A stretch of DNA of 64,000 nt from Mobula hypostoma (taxonomy: Eukaryota). The stretch lies in assembly GCF_963921235.1 (NCBI RefSeq), contig NC_086099.1, positions 128,402,001 to 128,466,000 of the forward strand, written 5' to 3'. The position numbers were made by a program, and so were the translations under genes. The notes below the pieces were generated by a model. That model searched no databases, was not told the origin of the DNA, and saw only the letters and a list, made by a program, of their open reading frames with translations. The first letter of the stretch is position 1, and each line of letters starts with the position of its first letter. This document shows, piece by piece, positions 1-64,000 of the stretch.

Positions 1-1910
1 AATTAGGAAGGGGAAAAAAGATTATGAGAGAAAACTGGCAGAGAACATAAAAACTGACTGTAAAAGCTTTTATAGATATGTAGAAAGGAAAAGACTGATA
101 AAGACAAATGTAGGTCCCCTGCAAACAGAAACAGGTGAATTGATTATGGGGAGCAAGGACATGGCAGACCAATTGAATAATTACTTTGGTTCTGTCTTCA
201 CTAAGGAGGACATAAATAATCTTCCAGAAATAGTAAGGGACAGAGGGTCCAGTGAGATGGAGGAACTGAGCGAAATACATGTTAGTAGGGAAGTGGTGTT
301 AGGTAAATTGAAGGGATTGAAGGCAGATAAATCCCCAGGGCCAGATGGTCTGCATCCCAGAGTGCTTAAGGAAGTAGCCCAAGAAATAGTGGATGCATTA
401 GTGATAATTTTTCAAAACTTGTTAGATTCTGGACTAGTTCCTGAGGATTGGAGGGTGGCTAATGTAACCCCACTTTTTAAAAAAAGGAGGGAGAGAGAAA
501 CCGGGGAATTATAGGCCGGTTAACCCAACGTCGGTGGTGGGGAAACTGCTGGAGTCAGTTATCAAGGATGTGATAACAGCACATTTGGAAAGCGGTGAAA
601 TGATCGGACAAAGTCAGCATGGATTTGTGAAAGGAAAATCATGTCTGACGAATCTCATAGAATTTTTTGAGGATGTAACTAGTAGAGTGGATAGGGGAGA
701 ACCAGTGGATGTGGTATATTTGGATTTTCAGAAGGCTTTTGACAAGGTCCCACACAGGAGATTAGTGTGCAAACTTAAAGCACATGGTATTGGGGGTAAG
801 GTATTGGTGTGGGTGGAGAATTGGTTAGCAGACAGGAAGCAAAGAGTGGGAATAAACGGGACCTTTTCAGAATGGCAGGCGGTGACTAGTGGGGTACCGC
901 AAGGCTCAGTGCTGGGACCTCAGTTGTTTACAATATATATTAATGACTTGGATGAGGGAATTAAATGCAGCATCTCCAAGTTTGCGGATGACACGAAGCT
1001 GGGTGGCAGTGTTAGCAGTGAGGAGGATGCTAAGAGGATGCAGGGTGACTTGGATAGGTTGGGTGAGTGGGCAAACTCATGGCAGATGCAATTTAATGTG
1101 GATAAATGTGAAGTTATCCACTTTGGTGGCAAAAATAGGAAAACAGATTATTATCTGAATGGTGACCGATTAGGAAAAGGGGAGGTGCAACGAGACCTGG
1201 GTGTCATTATACACCAGTCATTGAAAGTGGGCATGCAGGTACAGCAGGCGGTGAAAAAGGCGAACGGTATGCTGGCATTTATAGCGAGAGGATTCGAGTA
1301 CAGGAGCAGGGAGGTACTACTGCAGTTGTACAAGGCCTTGGTGAGACCACACCTGGAGTATTGTGTGCAGTTTTGGTCCCCTAATCTGAGGAAAGACATC
1401 TTTGCCATAGAGGGAGTACAAAGAAGGTTCACCAGATTGATTCCTGGGATGGCAGGTCTTTCATATGAAGAAAGACTGGATGAACTGGGCTTGTACTCGT
1501 TGGAATTTAGAAGATTGAGGGGGGATCTGATTGAAACGTATAAGATCCTAAAGGGATTGGACAGGCTAGATGCGGGAAGATTGTTCCCGATGTTGGGGAG
1601 GTCCAGAACGAGGGGTCACAGTTTGAGGATAGAGGGGAAGCCTTTTAGGACCGAGATTAGGAAAAACTTCTTCACACAGAGAGTGGTGAATCTGTGGAAT
1701 TCTCTGCCACAGCAAACTGTTGAGGCCAGTTCATTAGCTATGTTTAAAAGGAAGTTAGATATGGCCCTTGTGGCTACAGGGGTCAGGGGGTATGGAGGGA
1801 AGGCTGGGTTCTGAGTTGGATGATCAGCCATGATCATAATAAATGGCGGTGCAGGCTCGAAGGGCCGAATGGCCTACTCCTGCACCTATTTTCTATGTTT
1901 CTATGTTTCT
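1..1910 (+). mobile_element. Young CR1 LINE, 3' portion (ORF2 reverse transcriptase; extends beyond window start)
   Basis: ORFs 140-514 and 534-1814 give KSPGPDG, YLDFQKAFDKV, GVPQGSVLGP, KFADDTKL, RPHLEYCVQFW. One frameshift in the A-run at ~479-485. 3' tail (TTTCTATG)n at 1890-1910. Confidence 0.97.
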
Positions 1911-3794
1911 AAATGTGGTCAGCAACACTTGTAATGGACCTTCTCAGAGTATCTCCAGGTATTCTTTCATCGGTAGGCTCTCAACAGTACCCAATCTCAT
2001 GGCTAGTAGGTGCAGCACTCTGCAGCCAGCACAATCTCGTTGGCTTTAAATACCAGTTCATGGAAAGCTTTAAGAGTTTATTTTGTGCTATACAATTATG
2101 TAACATGCTTTCACTCAAAATAGATTTCCATCAGTTTAAATTTTAAAAAGTAGGGCAACTGGCAAGCGAATGGAATGTCCCAAAACTACCTCATGTAGAG
2201 GTAGGCCTTTTAAGCAGTTTGGCGTGCAGCACACTGTCGGGGGGCCAGTGGAAGTACCTCTGGACACTTTAGTTCTGTCTCTACATGCAGCTTAGCTAAC
2301 CTGCATTTCAAGGCCCCATTTGTCTTTCAGCTGCCCTGTAAGATTGAGGATGGCAAGGGCAGGTGAAATTATGCTTGCACTACAAGACTTTTAACAATTT
2401 TGCCCAGAAAGTGAGGACTATTATCACTTGAGATTTTCTTGGGGATTTCAAACCCAGCAATAAATTCTTATAATAAGAAAATAAAGTTATGGTATTATCT
2501 GAGTTAGATAAGTTTTTACCCATGGAGATAAACACAGTAACAAGAGCATAATCACAATCCAAATAGTTTTGTAACTGCATGAAGGCCATTTGGAGGTATA
2601 CAAAAACCCTCTTGGGGGAAGGCCCAGAGGTGGCAGATACTGGCAATGTCTGTCAGGATTAGGTCCCTGGCAAATCATACAATTACTACTACCTTTCTTG
2701 CTATGGTCAACAATCTCTCATTTTTGATTATATACATTATCCTTCATCATTTGGCATATAATGTGCTAATGTGTTTCAGTCTATAAAGTCATTTCAGCCT
2801 TTATGAACTGAAACACATGGATTTCATAATTGTCCACTGTCATGCACTACTCAAGGCACAATGAGATTCAGTGTAAATATTTACAGAAGCACCAGCTGCA
2901 ATGATGTAAGCTTTAAAACAAAAAGGTTCAGTTGCTTGAGCAGAACGGGAGGGAAGGTAGTTGTGGCACCTCAGGTGTTAATTCTGACGTGCACACACTG
3001 CATATTCACTAAACTGTTACCCAGCATCAGATCTAGAGGAAAGCCAAAAAAAAAACTACATGTAGGCTTATATGAGGTGGCATTTTACAAAAGGATGAAT
3101 TTAAAATCAATAAGTTCTTAAATACAGTTCAGGAACAGATCATTTAAACCATAGTCTATGGTGCTGGTGGGAGCAGAAATTGATGCATATAAAGCAGATA
3201 ATATTAAAACCAGAGTTGCCAGTGAAATTACAAGCAGAAGCATCTGGTAGCGATTAGCCAAACTTTGGTCACTGTCAATTTGGTTAAAATAGAAAATAAA
3301 AATGGCACCATTAAAATAACATTCAAATCCATTAGGACAGCTATCACAATACTTTTAAAGCAATGTACAATATTGCATCGAGGTTATAATAAAGCAGTCC
3401 GGGAAGTCTCAGAAATATTGCCCTTGTCCCCGTTAACAACTTTAATCAACTTTTGGCAATACAGTAAAACACCTGCAGTTTTACTTAACTCTCCCATCTC
3501 ACACAATTAACAGTTTTTTTTTCCCTTTAACATAAATTGCACCTTATTTACACCAACATTTATTAAGATTGGTGTCCCACTTCTAGAGTTAATCTGGAAT
3601 ACCTATGAAAATATTTTTGCATGCGTTCTAATGTCATTGTCTTTTGTACATACACTACGCATTTCCCCTGCAATCTACTGTGAGGGAAACATTTTCTTAC
3701 AGCTCCTACTAGATCAAATTAAGATCTATTTAAAATCAACATTTGGCTCATCCGCTCTGCACCCCTCCACCTCCTGTAGTGCTATTGGGGCGCG

Positions 3795-3880
3795 CACACA
3801 GACACACGATGGTGGAGGAACTCAGCAGGCCAGGCAGCATCTATGAAAGAGTATAGTCGACGTTTCGGTATGAGACCTTT
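3795..3880 (-). mobile_element. Penelope-like element (PLE) terminal-repeat fragment with truncated hammerhead
   Basis: GGAGGAACTCAGCAGGCCAGGCAGCATCTATG...AGTCGACGTTTCGG is shared with the other PLE copies in the window. Confidence 0.85.
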
Positions 3881-4564
3881 AAAGCTGTCTGATTCATGTA
3901 CAAACATGCATGCTACCAGAGTTCTTTAGAGGTTTGGGACAGGGAACTTTCACACTACCTTTCTTGCACACAAGTCATTTTGGAATTCCTTTTCTCGGGC
4001 CTCAGCGGTGCCATGGCCCAGGTATCAGCGACGCACCACATCTGAAAAAGTAGAGATGTTGCCAGGCCTTCTTTGTAATATCAATTACGTGCTGGTCCCA
4101 GGACACATTCTATAACACAAGCCCATAAATGCACTTGTAGACAATTATTAGTAATATAGGAAAGCAGAGGGAACAGTGATTAGGAAGTCATGATTGGAAA
4201 TGAGCAGACATTGAGCAGTAACAGCTGAAAGATAATACTTAATTGTTGAGAATGAAGGAATGGCAGATGTATTAAGTAAGCAATTTCCTGCAATTTTCAC
4301 AAAGGAATTGATTATTTGAGAATATAGAACAGATTTAAATACTTAAAAGATAATCAAGTTGAAGCCAAGACAAATGTACACAACCTTTTTACAACTAAGG
4401 ATACAGTAAAACTTCAAAAAGATTGCAGAGGATCTAGCTTGTTCAGTTAAATAAAACATTTTAAATATGTTGCATTACAAATAGTTCTTTGTAGCTGAAG
4501 TTTACTTTAGTTCAAACTTTCCTTGAGATTATATTGAAGAAAGCTGCAAGTAGAACACCTTCTG

Positions 4565-58145: not shown

Positions 58146-59308
58146 AATTATTTCAATATTATCTCATGTAACTCTCTCACCGTAGGCTTGTAATGAGTCA
58201 GCTGTGAATGCAAGTTAACAGTAACATAACTCTACAATGCATGGGAAATAATGATGAAAAAGCCATTTCCAGTAAATAAACACTTCCAAGGTAAATATGA
58301 TTCTGGTAGACACAAACACATAAAAGGTTGAAATGTTTCTTTAAGGGAAAGTAGGACTTTTACTTGTGAGAACACTGACACACTCATGCAAATTTACTGT
58401 TTGCCAGGAAACAATAATTTAACTCACACAAGTATAAAGTTAAATCAAAATTGTATTGACAAAATGTTTTAAACTAAAACAAACAAAATAAAGAAACAGG
58501 ACGATTACACATATATTGGTAAGACTATAGTGTGCACATAATCGTTGGAGCCCTTTGTTGGCATAATCAATTTGGTTTGCTTCACTTCATTTACCCATGG
58601 TACCGAACAATTCTGCATGAAAACACAGTTCAAGTGAAACAAATAGGTATCCATGCCAATTCCAAGGACAAGGTTTGAGCATTCTCCAAGGTCATGTGAT
58701 AACTAGCTAGTTAAAAGTCAACTGTGCATACTATTGTCTACATGAGGATTTTCCGACAGTGGTATCTGTCCTTCCAAATGGTTTCTGTGAACGTTTCACC
58801 ATGTTCTTCATTCATGTTTGTCGTCCATCTCCATTTCCTCCTCCTCCTCCTCCCCTTCCCCTTCCTGCTTCCTCCTCCCTCCTTGGCAGCGGTATTCCTC
58901 TGCTTTGTGATTTCCACAGGTGGGTTGGGTTTTCCAGTGGACATGTCACATTTAGCTGCAATATTAGCAGACATCAACCAAGTCATCTCAATCCAAATGT
59001 ATTTCACCTCATTTCTCAAAAGCTCTATTTCTGTGGCATCAGGGGTCACTTTAGCAACAGAGGCTACCGCTGAAGACATTACTTGGCTTTTGAAAACATT
59101 TCACTCCTCAATTATATTTTCCTCCTCTCTAACTTCTCAGAGTAACTCAGTAAAAGATGGGGGATCACACATCTTATTGGTCATTCGAATATGTAGAGCG
59201 ACCATATCTTGTGACAGTGAACCCTTCATGACTTGTTTCACCCTTAAGCAATTTCTCTCAGACGGTTGAATGCCCCTTGGCGGTACAAACAAAGCTGTTT
59301 CTCTAAAC

Positions 59309-59830
59309 AGTGGAAAGCAGCCAGTGAAGGATTGGAGCTTTGAGAGATTGACTCGAGAGATCCTGGCAGTTTTGGCATTTGGATTGTGCAATCAAGTCAA
59401 TCAAGATTTGAACAGCTCTGCAGAAAGCAGTTGATTAGACAATCAAAATTGGAATAGCTCAGACTCAGCAGAAAGCAACTTATTGGGCAATCAAGGTCAG
59501 GGGACCAAGCAGCTTGAAAAGCTCAAACAAATAAATAGAGGGGTAGCTTAAGCGGAGTGGCCAGTGAGTGAGTGGGTCAGTGAAGGAGTGAAGCTTTGAG
59601 GCTTTGGCTGAAGAGATTCTGGCAGTTTTGGCAGTAGGACTGTGCAATCAAGTCAATCAAGATTTGAATAGCTCAGACTCAGCAGAAAGCAGCTGATTGG
59701 GCAATCGAGGTCAGGTGACCAAGCAGTTTGAAAAGCTCAAACAAATAAATAGAGAGGTAGCTCAAACGGAGTGGCCAGTGAGTGAGTGGGCCTGTGAAGG
59801 AGTGAAGCTTTGAGGCTTTGACTCGAGAGG
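59309..59830 (+). promoter_or_regulatory. Tandem monomer 5' UTR of the CR1
   Basis: C(A/T)GTGAAGGA.TG.AGCTTTGAG recurs at 59322, 59578 and 59792; ATAAATA at 59531 and 59745. Confidence 0.8.
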
Positions 59831-59880
59831 CTTTGACGAGAAGAGGTGGAGGACGAGCTTGCTCCCAGTTAGGCTTTACA

Positions 59881-60815
59881 ATGCCTCCAGAGATGGTGAT
59901 GTGCCTCTCATGTGAGATGTGGCAGTCTTGGGGGAACTCCCCTCTCCCGCAGAGTCACATCTGCCAGAAGTGCATGTGGCTGGGCAATATGGAAAACCGT
60001 GTAAGGAATCTGGAGCAGCAGCTGGATGACCTTTGACTCATAAGGGAGAATGAGGCAGTCATAGATGAGAGCTACAGGGAGGTAGCCACACCTAGGCTGC
60101 CGGAAGCAGGTCGTTGAGTAACAGTCAGAGAGGGGAAAGCAAAGGTACTGCAGGTACTGCAGAGCATCCCTGTAGCCATTCCCCTGAATAATAAGTTTAC
60201 CATCCTGGATACTGTTGGTGGGGATGACCGACTAGGGGTGAGCCACGATGGCAGGACCTCTGGCACTGAATCTGACCCTGTGGTGCAGAAGGGTGGGACG
60301 GAGAAGAGGAGAGCTGTCATCACTGGGGACTCTACATGGGAGCAGACAGGAGGTTTTGTGAACGTGAGAAGGACACCCACATGGTTTGTTGCCTTCCAGG
60401 TGCCAGGGTCCGGGATGTCTCTGACCAGGTGCACGACATCCTGGTACAAGAGGGAAAGTAACCAGAAGTCGTGATACATGTTGGCACCAACGACATAGGC
60501 AGGAAGAGGAATGAGGTCCTGAAGTGTGAGTTTCGGGAACTAGGCTGAAGGCTGAAGAGCAGGACCTCCAGGGTGGCATTCTCAGGATTGCTGCCAGTGC
60601 TACGTGATAGTGATGGTAAGAATTGGAGGAGATGGCAGTTGAATGCGTGGCTGAGGAGTTGGTGCAGGGGACAGGGTTTTAGATTTTTGGGTCATTGGGA
60701 TCTCCTCTGGGGAAGGTGGGACCTGTACAGATTGGATGGGTTGCACCTGAACTTGAGGGGGAGGAATATCCTTGCAGGTACGTTTGCTAGCATGGTTCGG
60801 AAGGGTTTAAACTAA
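59881..60815 (+). pseudogene. CR1 ORF1 (zinc finger + coiled coil + SGNH esterase), disrupted
   Basis: CLSCEMW...CQKC..RVRNLEQQL; IPLNNKF; VITGDS; HVGTND; DGLHLN. Confidence 0.88.
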
Positions 60816-60850
60816 TTTGCAAGGGGGATGGGACCTGGAGCAATAGAGCA

Positions 60851-63734
60851 GTGGAAGAAATGCATGGAGTAAAGCCAGATATAATATATAAAGAGGCTTT
60901 AAGGAAAGAGAGGCAGAATAAAGGGTGTAAAGGTAGGAAGGTAGAAGGGCTAAAGTGTGTGTACTTCAATGCAAGAAGCATCAGGAACAAAGGTGATGAA
61001 CTGAGAGCTTGGATACATACATGGAATTATGATGTAGTGGCCATTACAAAGACTTGGCTGGCACCAGGGCAGGAATGGATTCTCAATATTCCTGGATTTC
61101 AGTGCTTTAAAAGGGATAGAGAGGGGAGGAAAAGGGGAGGAGAGTTGACATTACTGGTCAGGGATACTATTACAGCTACAGAAAGGGTGGGTAATGTAAC
61201 AGGATCCTCCTTTGAGTCAGTATGGGTGGAAGTCAGGAACAGGAAGGGAGCAGTTACTCTATTGGGAGTATTCTATAGGCCCCCTGGTAGCAGCAGAGAT
61301 ACCGAGGAGCAGATTGGGAGGCAGATTTTAGAAAGGTGCAAAAATAACAGGGTTGTTATCATGGGTGACTTTAACTTCCCTAATATTGAATGGCACCTGA
61401 TTTGTTCCAATGGTTTAGACGGAGCAGAATTTGTTAAGTGTGTTTAGGATGGATTCCTGTCACAGTATGTGGACAGGCCGACTAGGGGGAATGCCATACT
61501 AGATCTAGTATTAGGTAATGAACCGGGTCAGGTCACAGATCTGTCAGTGGGTGAACACCGGGGGGACAGTGAGCACCGCTCCCTGGCCTTTAATATTATC
61601 ATGGAAAAGGATAGAATCAGAGAGGACAGGAAAACTTTTAATTGGAGAAGGGAGAATTATGAGGCTATAAGGCTAGAACTTGCGGGTGTGAATTGGGATG
61701 ATGTTTTTACAGGTACTATGGACATGTGGTCGATGTTTAGAGATCTCTTGCAGGATATTAGGGATAAATTTGTCCCGGTGAGGAAGATAAAGAATGGTAG
61801 GGTGAAGGAACCATGGGTGACAAGAGAGGTGGAAAATGTAGTCAGGTGGAAGAAGGCAGCATACATGAGGTTTAGGAAGCAAGGATCAGATGGGTCTATT
61901 GAGGAATATAGGGAAGCAAGAAAGGAGCTTAAGAAGGGGCTGAGGAGAGCAAGAAGGGGGCATGAGGAGGCCTTGGCAAGAAGTGTAAAGGAAAAGCCCC
62001 AAGGCATTCTTCAATTACGTGAAGAACAAAAGGATGACAAGACTGAAGGTAGGACCGATTAGAGATAAAGGTGGGAAGAGATGCCTGGATGTGTGGAAGT
62101 GAGAGAGGTTCTCAATGACTACTTCTGTTCGGTATTCACCAATGAGAGGGAACTTGATGATGGTGAGGACAATATGAGTGAGGTTGATGTTCTGGAGCAT
62201 GTTGATATTAAGGGAGAGGAGGTGTTGGAGTTGTTAAAATACATTAGGACGGATAAGTCCCTGGGGCCTCATGGAATATTCCCCAGGCTGCTTCTCGAGG
62301 TGAGGAAAGAGATTGCTGAGCCTCTGGCTAGGATCTTTATGTCCTCGTTGTCCAATGGAATGAGACCGGTGGATTGGAGGGAGGCGATGTTGTCTCCTTG
62401 TTCAAAAAAGGTAATAGGGATAGTCCGGGTAATTATAGACCAGTGAGCCTTACGTCTGTGGTGGGAAAGCTGTTGGAAAAGATTCTTAGAGCTAGGATCT
62501 CTGGGCATTTAGAGAATCATGGTCTGATCAGGGACAGTCAGCATGGCTTTGTGAAGAGCAGATTGTGTCTAACAAACCTGATAGAGTTCTTTGAGAAGGT
62601 GACCAGGCATATAGATGAGGGTAGTGCAGTGGATGTGATCTACATGGATTTTAGTAAGGCATTTGACAAGGTTCCACATGGTAAGCTTATTCAGAACGTC
62701 AGAAGGCATAGGATCCAGGGAAGTTTGGCCGGGTGGATTGAGAATTGGCTTGCCTGCAGAAAGCAGAGGGTTGTGGTGGAGGGAGTATATTAGGATTGGA
62801 GGGTTGTGACTAGTGGTTTCCCACAAGGATCGGTTCTGGGACCTCTACTTTTTGTCATTTTTATTAATGACCTGGATGTGGGGGTAGAAGGGTGGGTTGG
62901 CAAGTTTGCAGACAACACAAAGGTTGGTGGTGTTGTGGGTAGTGTAGAGGATTGTCGAAGATTGCAGAGAGACAGTGATAGGATGCAGAAGAGGGCTGAG
63001 AAGTGGCAGATGGAATTCAACCCGGAGAAGTGTGATGTTGTACACTTTGGAAGAACAAATTCCAAGTCAGAGTACAAAGTAAATGGCAGGGTACTTGGTA
63101 GTGTGGATGAGCAGAGGGATCTGGGGGTACATGTCCACAGATCCCTGAAAGTTGCCTCACGGGTGGATAGGGTAGTTAAGAAAGCCTATGGGATGTTAGC
63201 TTTCATAAGTCGAGGGATAGAGTTTAAGAGCCGCGAGGTAAGGATGCAGCTCTATAAAACTCTGGTTAGGCCACACTTGGAGTACTGTGTCCAGTTCTGG
63301 TCACCTCACTATAGGAAGGATGTGGAAGCACTGGAAAGGGTACAGAGGAGATTTACCTGGATGCTGCCTGGTTTAGAAAGTATTCATTATGATCAGAGAT
63401 TAAGGGAGCTAGGGCTTTACTCTCTAGAGAGAAGGAAGATGAGAGGAGACATGATCGAGGTTTACAAGGTATTAAGAGGGATAGATAGAGTGGACAGCCA
63501 GCGCGTCTTCCCTGGGGCACCACTGCTCAGTAAAAGAGGACATGGCTTTAAGGTAAGGGGTGGGAAGTTCAAGGGGGAATTTGAGGAAGGTTTTTTACTC
63601 AGAGAGTGGTTGGTGTGTGGAATGCACTGCCTGAGTCAGTGGTGGAGGCAGATACACTGGTGAAATTTAAGAGACTACTAGACAGGTATATGGAGGAATT
63701 TAAAGTGGGGGGGTTATATGGGAGACAGGGTTTG
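60851..63734 (+). pseudogene. CR1 ORF2 (APE endonuclease + RT), disrupted
   Basis: YFNARSIRNK, GVFYRPP, MGDFNFP, LDLVL, YMDFSKAFDKV, PQGSVLGP, KFADNTK; several stops and frameshifts. Confidence 0.93.
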
Positions 63735-64000
63735 AGGGTCAGCACAACATTGTGACTGAAGGGCCTGTGCTGTGCTGTACTATTCTATGTTCTATGTTTA
63801 AACTGAAACTGTAGGCAGAGAGCTTCTTTCCTCCCTCGTGGAATGTCTCCCTGAACTTCACCATGAGATCAGCTAAACTTTCAGTTGTGCCAAAAGCATT
63901 TTCCAGAGCCTGCATATATTTAGCTGATGTGACTAAAGGATATTCTGCTTTTAGGAACTTCTCTACGTCAGCAGCAGTTCTCATTAAACTCTCTACAAGT

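Follow-up and report, generated by a model that had tools for sequence, protein, structure and literature searches.

A family-wide tandem array at the 5' end of a CR1-type LINE of myliobatiform rays, a plausible counterpart of the L1 monomer promoter

The CR1-type element and its insertion site

The plus-strand interval 59309-63798 of the window (the whole 64-kb stretch of DNA that was analysed) is an old, inactivated, essentially full-length copy of a CR1-type LINE, inserted into a decayed PNMA/gag-like open reading frame. Its 5' end (59309-59830) is a head-to-tail array of approximately 2.2 copies of a 214-nt unit, on which a repeat search, BLAST and MAFFT agree. The features of the element and its flanks are as follows.

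58738-59308, minus strand: decayed PNMA/gag-like ORF, downstream part (Pfam PF14893); the upstream part lies at 63804-63984
59304-59308, plus strand: target-site duplication (TSD), 5' copy TAAAC, read directly
59309-59562, plus strand: monomer 1, 254 nt, the 214-nt unit plus a net 42-nt inner duplication (repeat search, BLAST, MAFFT)
59563-59776, plus strand: monomer 2, 214 nt, with boundaries placed at the A of CCAGTG (repeat search, MAFFT, motif scan)
59777-59830, plus strand: partial monomer 3, the first ~54 nt of the unit (MAFFT)
59831-59880, plus strand: non-repeated tether from the array to the ORF1 ATG, conserved in the same-family contig L001 (alignment)
59881-60815, plus strand: ORF1, interrupted by at least one frameshift and by an in-frame stop at 60034; its N-terminus is Cys-rich and its C-terminal part resembles GDSL/SGNH esterases
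60806-60812, plus strand: slippery heptamer U_UUA_AAC just 5' of the ORF1 stop, with ORF2 in the -1 frame
60851-63663, plus strand: ORF2, with apurinic-type endonuclease (APE) and reverse transcriptase (RT), broken by stops and a frameshift
63664-63798, plus strand: 3' UTR, with the tail ATTCTATG TTCTATG TT (63782-63798), a CR1-type octamer, read directly
63799-63803, plus strand: TSD, 3' copy TAAAC, read directly

CR1-like elements encode an ORF1 protein with a Cys-rich N-terminus and, in many families, an esterase domain. The assignment of this element to CR1 is based on its predicted architecture and its tail. Pieces of ORF2 match Pfam Exo_endo_phos (E = 8.5e-10) and RVT_1 (E = 1.2e-16 and 7.2e-9). 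The Lipase_GDSL_2 match on 60573-60815 scores 23.4 bits, under the Pfam cutoff of 32.9; the esterase domain (PF13472) is clear in the homologous intact ORF1 piece of L001 and in the relatives of that contig. At the end of ORF1, UAA directly follows U_UUA_AAC (60806-60815). In CR1 elements the 3' end is an octamer microsatellite, (ATTCTRTG)n, in place of poly(A) (PMC5381603; PMC2612034). Membership of the L1 clade was ruled out by the esterase-type ORF1 (versus coiled coil, RRM and CTD) and by the octamer tail (versus poly(A)). The first-pass annotation had called the element a CR1 LINE, and this identification is upheld by the APE, RT and GDSL matches, the octamer-type tail, and close protein relatives in rays.

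Protein searches seeded with pieces of the APE and of the ORF1 esterase part, and with the ORF1 N-terminus, recovered one same-family contig, L001, in addition to NCBI ray proteins; L001 begins at the equivalent of window position 59802, just past the monomers. The nearest named proteins, all "uncharacterized", are from Mobula hypostoma (92%), Mobula birostris (83-88%) and Hypanus sabinus. All named protein relatives are "uncharacterized protein" entries of rays and sharks, and look-ups of protein clusters returned clusters of one or two members each. In M. birostris, pieces of CR1 ORF1 (P0025-P0029; 83-88% identical) are annotated in isoforms of ABHD14A-like and TMEM204, which probably represents either exonisation or a gene-model artefact. 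A more distant relative, L002 (GCA_019909505.1, JADHER010000072.1, positions 1-4159), is a 4.2-kb contig filed under Pseudomonas aeruginosa that constitutes a complete, intact CR1-type LINE (ORF1 of 294 aa, ORF2 of 939 aa) with ~69% nucleotide identity to the window element; its ORF1 is annotated as a bacterial SGNH/GDSL hydrolase, and the contig is almost certainly vertebrate contamination.

The CR1 insertion splits the minus-strand PNMA/gag-like ORF. The upstream piece corresponds to Pfam PNMA positions 46-101 (to 106 with the next five residues) and the downstream piece extrapolates to ~106; the profile positions meet at ~106, and thus the host sequence is contiguous across the insertion to within ~2 residues. 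Taken alone, the 5-bp TSD is weak evidence for a boundary; the element boundary beside it is supported by the continuity of the PNMA profile and by contig depth, which is low in 59278-59331 and then ~20-fold higher in the next bin. The PNMA/gag-like ORF is itself repeated, with tens to hundreds of copies by contig depth.

Structure and abundance of the tandem array

The tandem duplication of the 214-nt unit is real. The repeat search pairs 59437-59615 with 59651-59829 at a spacing of 214 (91% identity) and 59322-59418 with 59578-59674 at a spacing of 256 (87% identity), so that identity among the units of the array is 87-91%; it also finds an inner repeat in unit 1 at a spacing of 48 (59416-59446 and 59464-59494). 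In a MAFFT alignment of the three units, unit 1 has a 42-column insertion relative to unit 2, corresponding to an extra copy of the ~48-nt segment that is 6 nt shorter, and partial unit 3 tracks the unit for ~54 nt before passing into the 50-nt tether, which extends to the ORF1 ATG (59881). The array had earlier been described as ~2.1 copies of a 214-bp unit, the first of 256 bp owing to a ~42-bp inner duplication; the array and the inner duplication stand, and the first unit measures 254 nt.

Repeats in this region are nested at several scales: (AGTG)n, 16-nt, 8-nt, 48-nt, and 214-nt. TRF reported the small nested repeats, (AGTG)n and the 16-nt/8-nt units at the junctions, and not the 214-nt period, probably because there are just ~2.2 copies with an indel. 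BLAST of the element against the 64-kb window found no further copy of the monomer. The monomer RNA folds no better than shuffled sequences (z = -0.92), and Rfam gave no match within 58500-64000. The monomers of this decayed copy have a GC content of 44-46% and a CpG observed/expected ratio of 0.17-0.20, outside the range of a CpG island. Neither a full HMMER search using the 73-aa ORF that spans monomer and tether nor exact-pattern scans of metagenome and viral contigs gave any match; a match to an AT-rich bacterial MAG in a scan of genome contigs was rejected as a chance match.

Judged by contig coverage, the array is family-wide, in a CR1-type LINE family that is very abundant in myliobatiform rays. 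Between 0.29 and 0.44 of the sampled words of the stretch are present in public DNA runs of at least five organisms, from separate studies. Mapping on 58900-60500 at ≥85% likeness used contigs from two DNA runs, one each of organisms A and B, and from two presumed RNA runs, one each of organisms A and F; each of the two DNA runs contributes 20-90 distinct contigs over variant sites within the monomers. Single-copy depth, taken from flank contigs with 0-2 differences, is ~13 in run X1 and ~56 in run X4. Division of the summed depth by these values gives ~500 unit-1-type units, ~3,200-3,500 unit-2-type units, ~3,500-4,500 tethers and ~10,000 ORF1 5' regions, in agreement between the two species; summed contig depth is not copy number, and these figures are orders of magnitude. 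The monomer is thus present at very roughly 3,000 unit-equivalents per genome in ray species. A 341-nt contig from run X1 (record 5; 87% identity, gap-free) is collinear with 59398-59608; it spans both the inner duplication and the junction of units 1 and 2, and therefore a diverged paralog has the same layout. High copy number in several ray species, together with this collinear paralog, shows that the array is a feature of the family and not a local duplication.

Unit-1-type sequence is ~7 times rarer than unit-2-type sequence, which is approximately equal in abundance to the tether. This pattern fits a family in which most copies have about one unit; effects of truncation or mapping could also produce it. 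Two further observations concern variation between copies. The ~48-nt sub-repeat CTCAGCAGAAAGCAGCTGATTGGGCAATC (59656-59709; sub-repeats 59416-59494) is 3- to 6-fold deeper in contig coverage than the remainder of the monomer, and one presumed-RNA contig loops back into it (loose end 59731); this sub-repeat may have been amplified on its own in other copies. Within ORF1, 35-69 contigs in each DNA run depart from the sequence of this copy at 60381/60389 and 60421/60424, which suggests subfamilies with a replaced or rearranged ORF1 segment.

Promoter-like motifs, unit junctions and competing readings

Each full unit carries ATTGG at -81, the palindrome GGTCAGGKGACC at -68, and ATAAATA at -32, counted from the A of CCAGTG. 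The motifs are listed here for unit 1, each with its twin in unit 2.

59482-59486, plus strand: ATTGG (inverted CCAAT), -81 of predicted start 59563; twin at 59696-59700, -81 of 59777
59495-59506, plus strand: palindrome GGTCAGGGGACC, -68 to -57; twin GGTCAGGTGACC at 59709-59720
59531-59537, plus strand: TATA-like ATAAATA; twin at 59745-59751, each 32 nt 5' of the A in CCAGTG
59561-59566, plus strand: Inr-like CCAGTG, opening a variable (AGTG)n stretch; twin at 59775-59780

The A of CCAGTG (59563 and 59777) is exactly 32 nt past the first A of ATAAATA, and the palindrome variants GGTCAGG(G/T)GACC begin at 59495 and 59709. A motif scan returned every position that the first-pass annotation had assigned to ATAAATA and to the A of CCAGTG, along with the 32-nt spacing, and located the GGTCAGG(T/G)GACC that it had named. 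The annotation had also placed one ATTGG in each unit; this holds for unit 2 (59696), and unit 1 has three (59331, 59448, 59482). A third CCAGTG lies at 59321. GCCAGT, at the CCAGTG site, fits BBCABW, the human Inr consensus. The 64-kb window has 23 ATAAATA sites, counting both strands, and just two of them, both in the array, have an Inr match at that offset; the two TATA/Inr sets are copies of each other and thus amount to one independent event. We regard the TATA/Inr geometry as suggestive, and not statistically strong. No DPE-like element was seen at +28 on inspection by eye. The predicted start at 59777 would give a 104-nt leader.

Our preferred reading, to which we lean with modest confidence, is that the monomers form a promoter array and that each would drive a start at the head of the next. 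Each monomer would act as an upstream-type Pol II promoter that combines CCAAT (-81), a palindromic factor site (-68) and a TATA-like box (-32), and would initiate transcription at the Inr-like CCAGTG heading the following monomer. Monomer boundaries would then be transcript 5' ends, and full-length insertions would, like this copy, start at such a boundary. Since just those monomers downstream of the start used would be retained in a transcript, the family would need to regain units, for example by template switching of RT at the 5' end of the RNA or by unequal recombination. We infer promoter activity, start sites, and the loss and regain of units; the array, its presence across the family, the geometry of the motifs and the position of this 5' end at a junction are observed. 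A more specific proposal, that a CR1 family without an internal promoter propagates a TATA/CCAAT-type array, regains units by 5' template switching, and bears (AGTG)n junctions as the footprint of that process, is one that we advance tentatively and consider possible, on balance doubtful.

The 5' ends accord in part with this monomer-promoter reading. The 5' end of the window element, AGTGGAAAGCAGCCAGTGAAGG, aligns in MAFFT with the unit junction CCAGTGAGTGAGTGGGTCAGTGAAGG, at +1, or at +5 owing to reiteration of AGTG. It had been proposed that the element begins at approximately +1 of a unit; its 5' end does align to a junction at one of these two positions, and the variable junction blurs any single +1. 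In another copy, a joint that goes back from 59557 to 59310 places the sequence of this 5' end in the interior of an array, with a unit ahead of a unit-1-type start; 59309 therefore marks a junction between units and not a unique terminus of the family. Among the best-supported loose ends listed for run X17 (organism F; there are 1,340 further loose ends), two contigs are unrelated to the element up to 59774 and match it thereafter, 3 nt from the predicted start at 59777. Three boundaries therefore fall at junctions, namely the complete 5' junction of this copy and the two X17 contig boundaries. For one copy, random truncation would fall within ±5 nt of a junction with a chance of ~5%. Most joints are in phase (e.g., 59618 to 59837, 59826 to 59369, and 59628 to 59386); in-phase joints are mosaics of unit variants and so carry no information on unit number. 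Steps in depth at the junctions were considered as 5' ends and rejected, as fluctuations of depth inside a unit are just as large as those across junctions.

Several observations count against a promoter function. In the interval 59750-59775, from ATAAATA to CCAGTG, contig depth drops 70- to 150-fold relative to both sides, which marks the stretch between the TATA-like box and CCAGTG as the least conserved, or most indel-prone, part of the unit. Such variability would not be expected of a tightly spaced core promoter. The CpG observed/expected ratio of 0.17-0.20 in this decayed copy is a further point against it. The depth profile of contigs from the presumed RNA runs mirrors that of the DNA runs, which also counts against the promoter reading, and contigs cannot show starts; ratios of presumed-RNA to DNA depth were rejected as evidence of expression, as they are derived from contig depths and are noisy. 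The CR1 families L002, L003 and L004 (~70% nucleotide identity) have unrelated 5' regions without tandem repeats, L002 having just 133 nt upstream and L004 being truncated; these repeat-free regions would likewise weigh against a promoter array.

The alternatives differ in how much of the array they explain. Most LINEs have an internal promoter and start transcription at or near the 5' end, and the array could be a duplication fixed in the family 5' UTR, with a single start at or near the extreme 5' end and with the junction position of this end being either the true terminus or a chance truncation. We regard this as unlikely, while according it more weight than any other rival. In its favour, the paralog repeats the arrangement of units 1 and 2, extra 42-nt segment included, and mammalian L1 often carries tandemly duplicated 5' UTR motifs for which no function is proven (PMC5381506). 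A fixed duplication is at odds with the 59557-to-59310 joint, by which 59309 is not a unique family terminus, and with the recurrence of the CCAAT/TATA/Inr set in each unit at canonical spacing; moreover, a ~7-fold step between unit 1 and unit 2, with unit 2 close to the tether in abundance, is hard to obtain by smooth truncation. Duplication at this locus after insertion would account for the lack of another monomer copy in the 64-kb window, and is very improbable: it is contradicted by the diverged paralog (87%) with the same arrangement, by the tens of distinct contigs from two species that cover the monomer, including the segment specific to unit 1, and by monomer depth at hundreds to thousands of times the single-copy depth.

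It is also conceivable, with a lower probability than a fixed duplication, that the TATA/Inr arrangement is coincidental, the array being a by-product of RT or repair (template jumps, slippage), an enhancer or factor-binding array, or a silencing target or decoy. The nesting of repeats at several scales, the excess depth of the 59656-59709 sub-repeat and the lack of an RNA structure signal in the monomer are all in keeping with such origins, as is the junction sequence, which is microsatellite-like and differs between copies as (AGTG)n/(CCAG)n variants (e.g., GTGAGTGAGCGAGCCAGCCAGCCAGC). Template switching at the RNA's 5' end, invoked above for the regain of promoter units, would fit these junctions too. 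A by-product or non-promoter array leaves unexplained why the junctions should fall where TATA and Inr are 32 nt apart and CCAAT lies at -81, and why the array is kept in approximately one-third of the copies that reach ORF1, in several species.

Relation to L1 monomers and to other CR1 elements

LINEs must carry their promoter inside the transcript, and monomer arrays are, to our knowledge, the single means of using upstream-type promoters; they have been studied almost solely in rodent L1. The ray array is real and, on contig evidence, family-wide; it may plausibly be the CR1 counterpart of the L1 monomer promoter, by a mechanism that we infer. If so, it would be the first monomeric LINE promoter outside L1, an independent and mechanistically clearer reinvention of the solution found in mouse L1, and its CCAAT/TATA/Inr units would show that the monomer solution had more than one origin. 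Its single predicted start per unit would also make it a simpler system in which to ask how monomers are lost and regained, and why the ray family keeps thousands of 5' regions and the CR1 elements of birds hardly ever do. Should the units not be promoters, what is left is a duplicated 5' UTR, which is ordinary.

Among CR1 elements, full-length copies are rare in birds; unlike bird CR1, the ray family retains thousands of 5' regions. The ray element shares clade and overall ORF layout with chicken and turtle CR1, the 5' UTRs of which are the subject of earlier studies (Haas et al., 1997, 2001; Kajikawa et al., 1997; as cited in PMC6740152). A literature search found no report of a monomer array in the 5' UTRs of chicken or turtle CR1, nor, in full-text literature, of any monomeric promoter in CR1 or CR1-like elements; this agrees with the earlier remark that such an arrangement had not been described for CR1, and the absence is weak evidence, as subscription journals and Repbase notes lie mostly outside the scope of that search. 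CR1 subfamilies differ in (swap) their 5' UTRs while the rest is conserved, at least as Haas et al. (2001) are cited in PMC6740152, and such swapping fits the unrelated 5' UTRs of L002 and L003.

Mouse L1 monomers are of types A, F, Gf and Tf. The 5' UTR of mouse and rat L1 is built of monomers of ~200 or ~650 bp that carry transcription signals, followed by a tether to ORF1 (PMC5381506). The mouse-L1-like layout proposed by the first-pass annotation was recovered here, with an array of monomers, a truncated unit and a tether before ORF1: as in mouse L1, the LINE opens with ~200-nt units arranged head to tail, a truncated unit follows, and a non-repeated tether leads to ORF1, although the tether is 50 nt in the ray CR1 versus ~250 nt in mouse L1. 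The problem of keeping or regaining units would be shared as well. Tandem 5' UTR motifs are also present in two or three copies in L1 of rat, hyrax, horse, elephant and opossum (PMC5381506), a number comparable to the 2.2 units of the ray CR1; these motifs are ~70-100 bp and L1-borne, with no TATA-type geometry described, whereas the ray unit is 214 nt. Unlike mouse L1, the ray element belongs to the CR1 clade, with an esterase ORF1, an octamer tail and an ORF1/ORF2 junction of the -1 frameshift type, and its unit sequences are unrelated to mouse L1 monomers. Mouse L1 monomers are of the CpG-island, YY1 type; the ray units have a predicted upstream-type layout of CCAAT, TATA and Inr, and this copy, unlike L1 monomers, is without a CpG island. 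The ray array thus resembles the L1 monomer array in layout, is not L1, and appears from its predicted motifs to differ in the type of core promoter.
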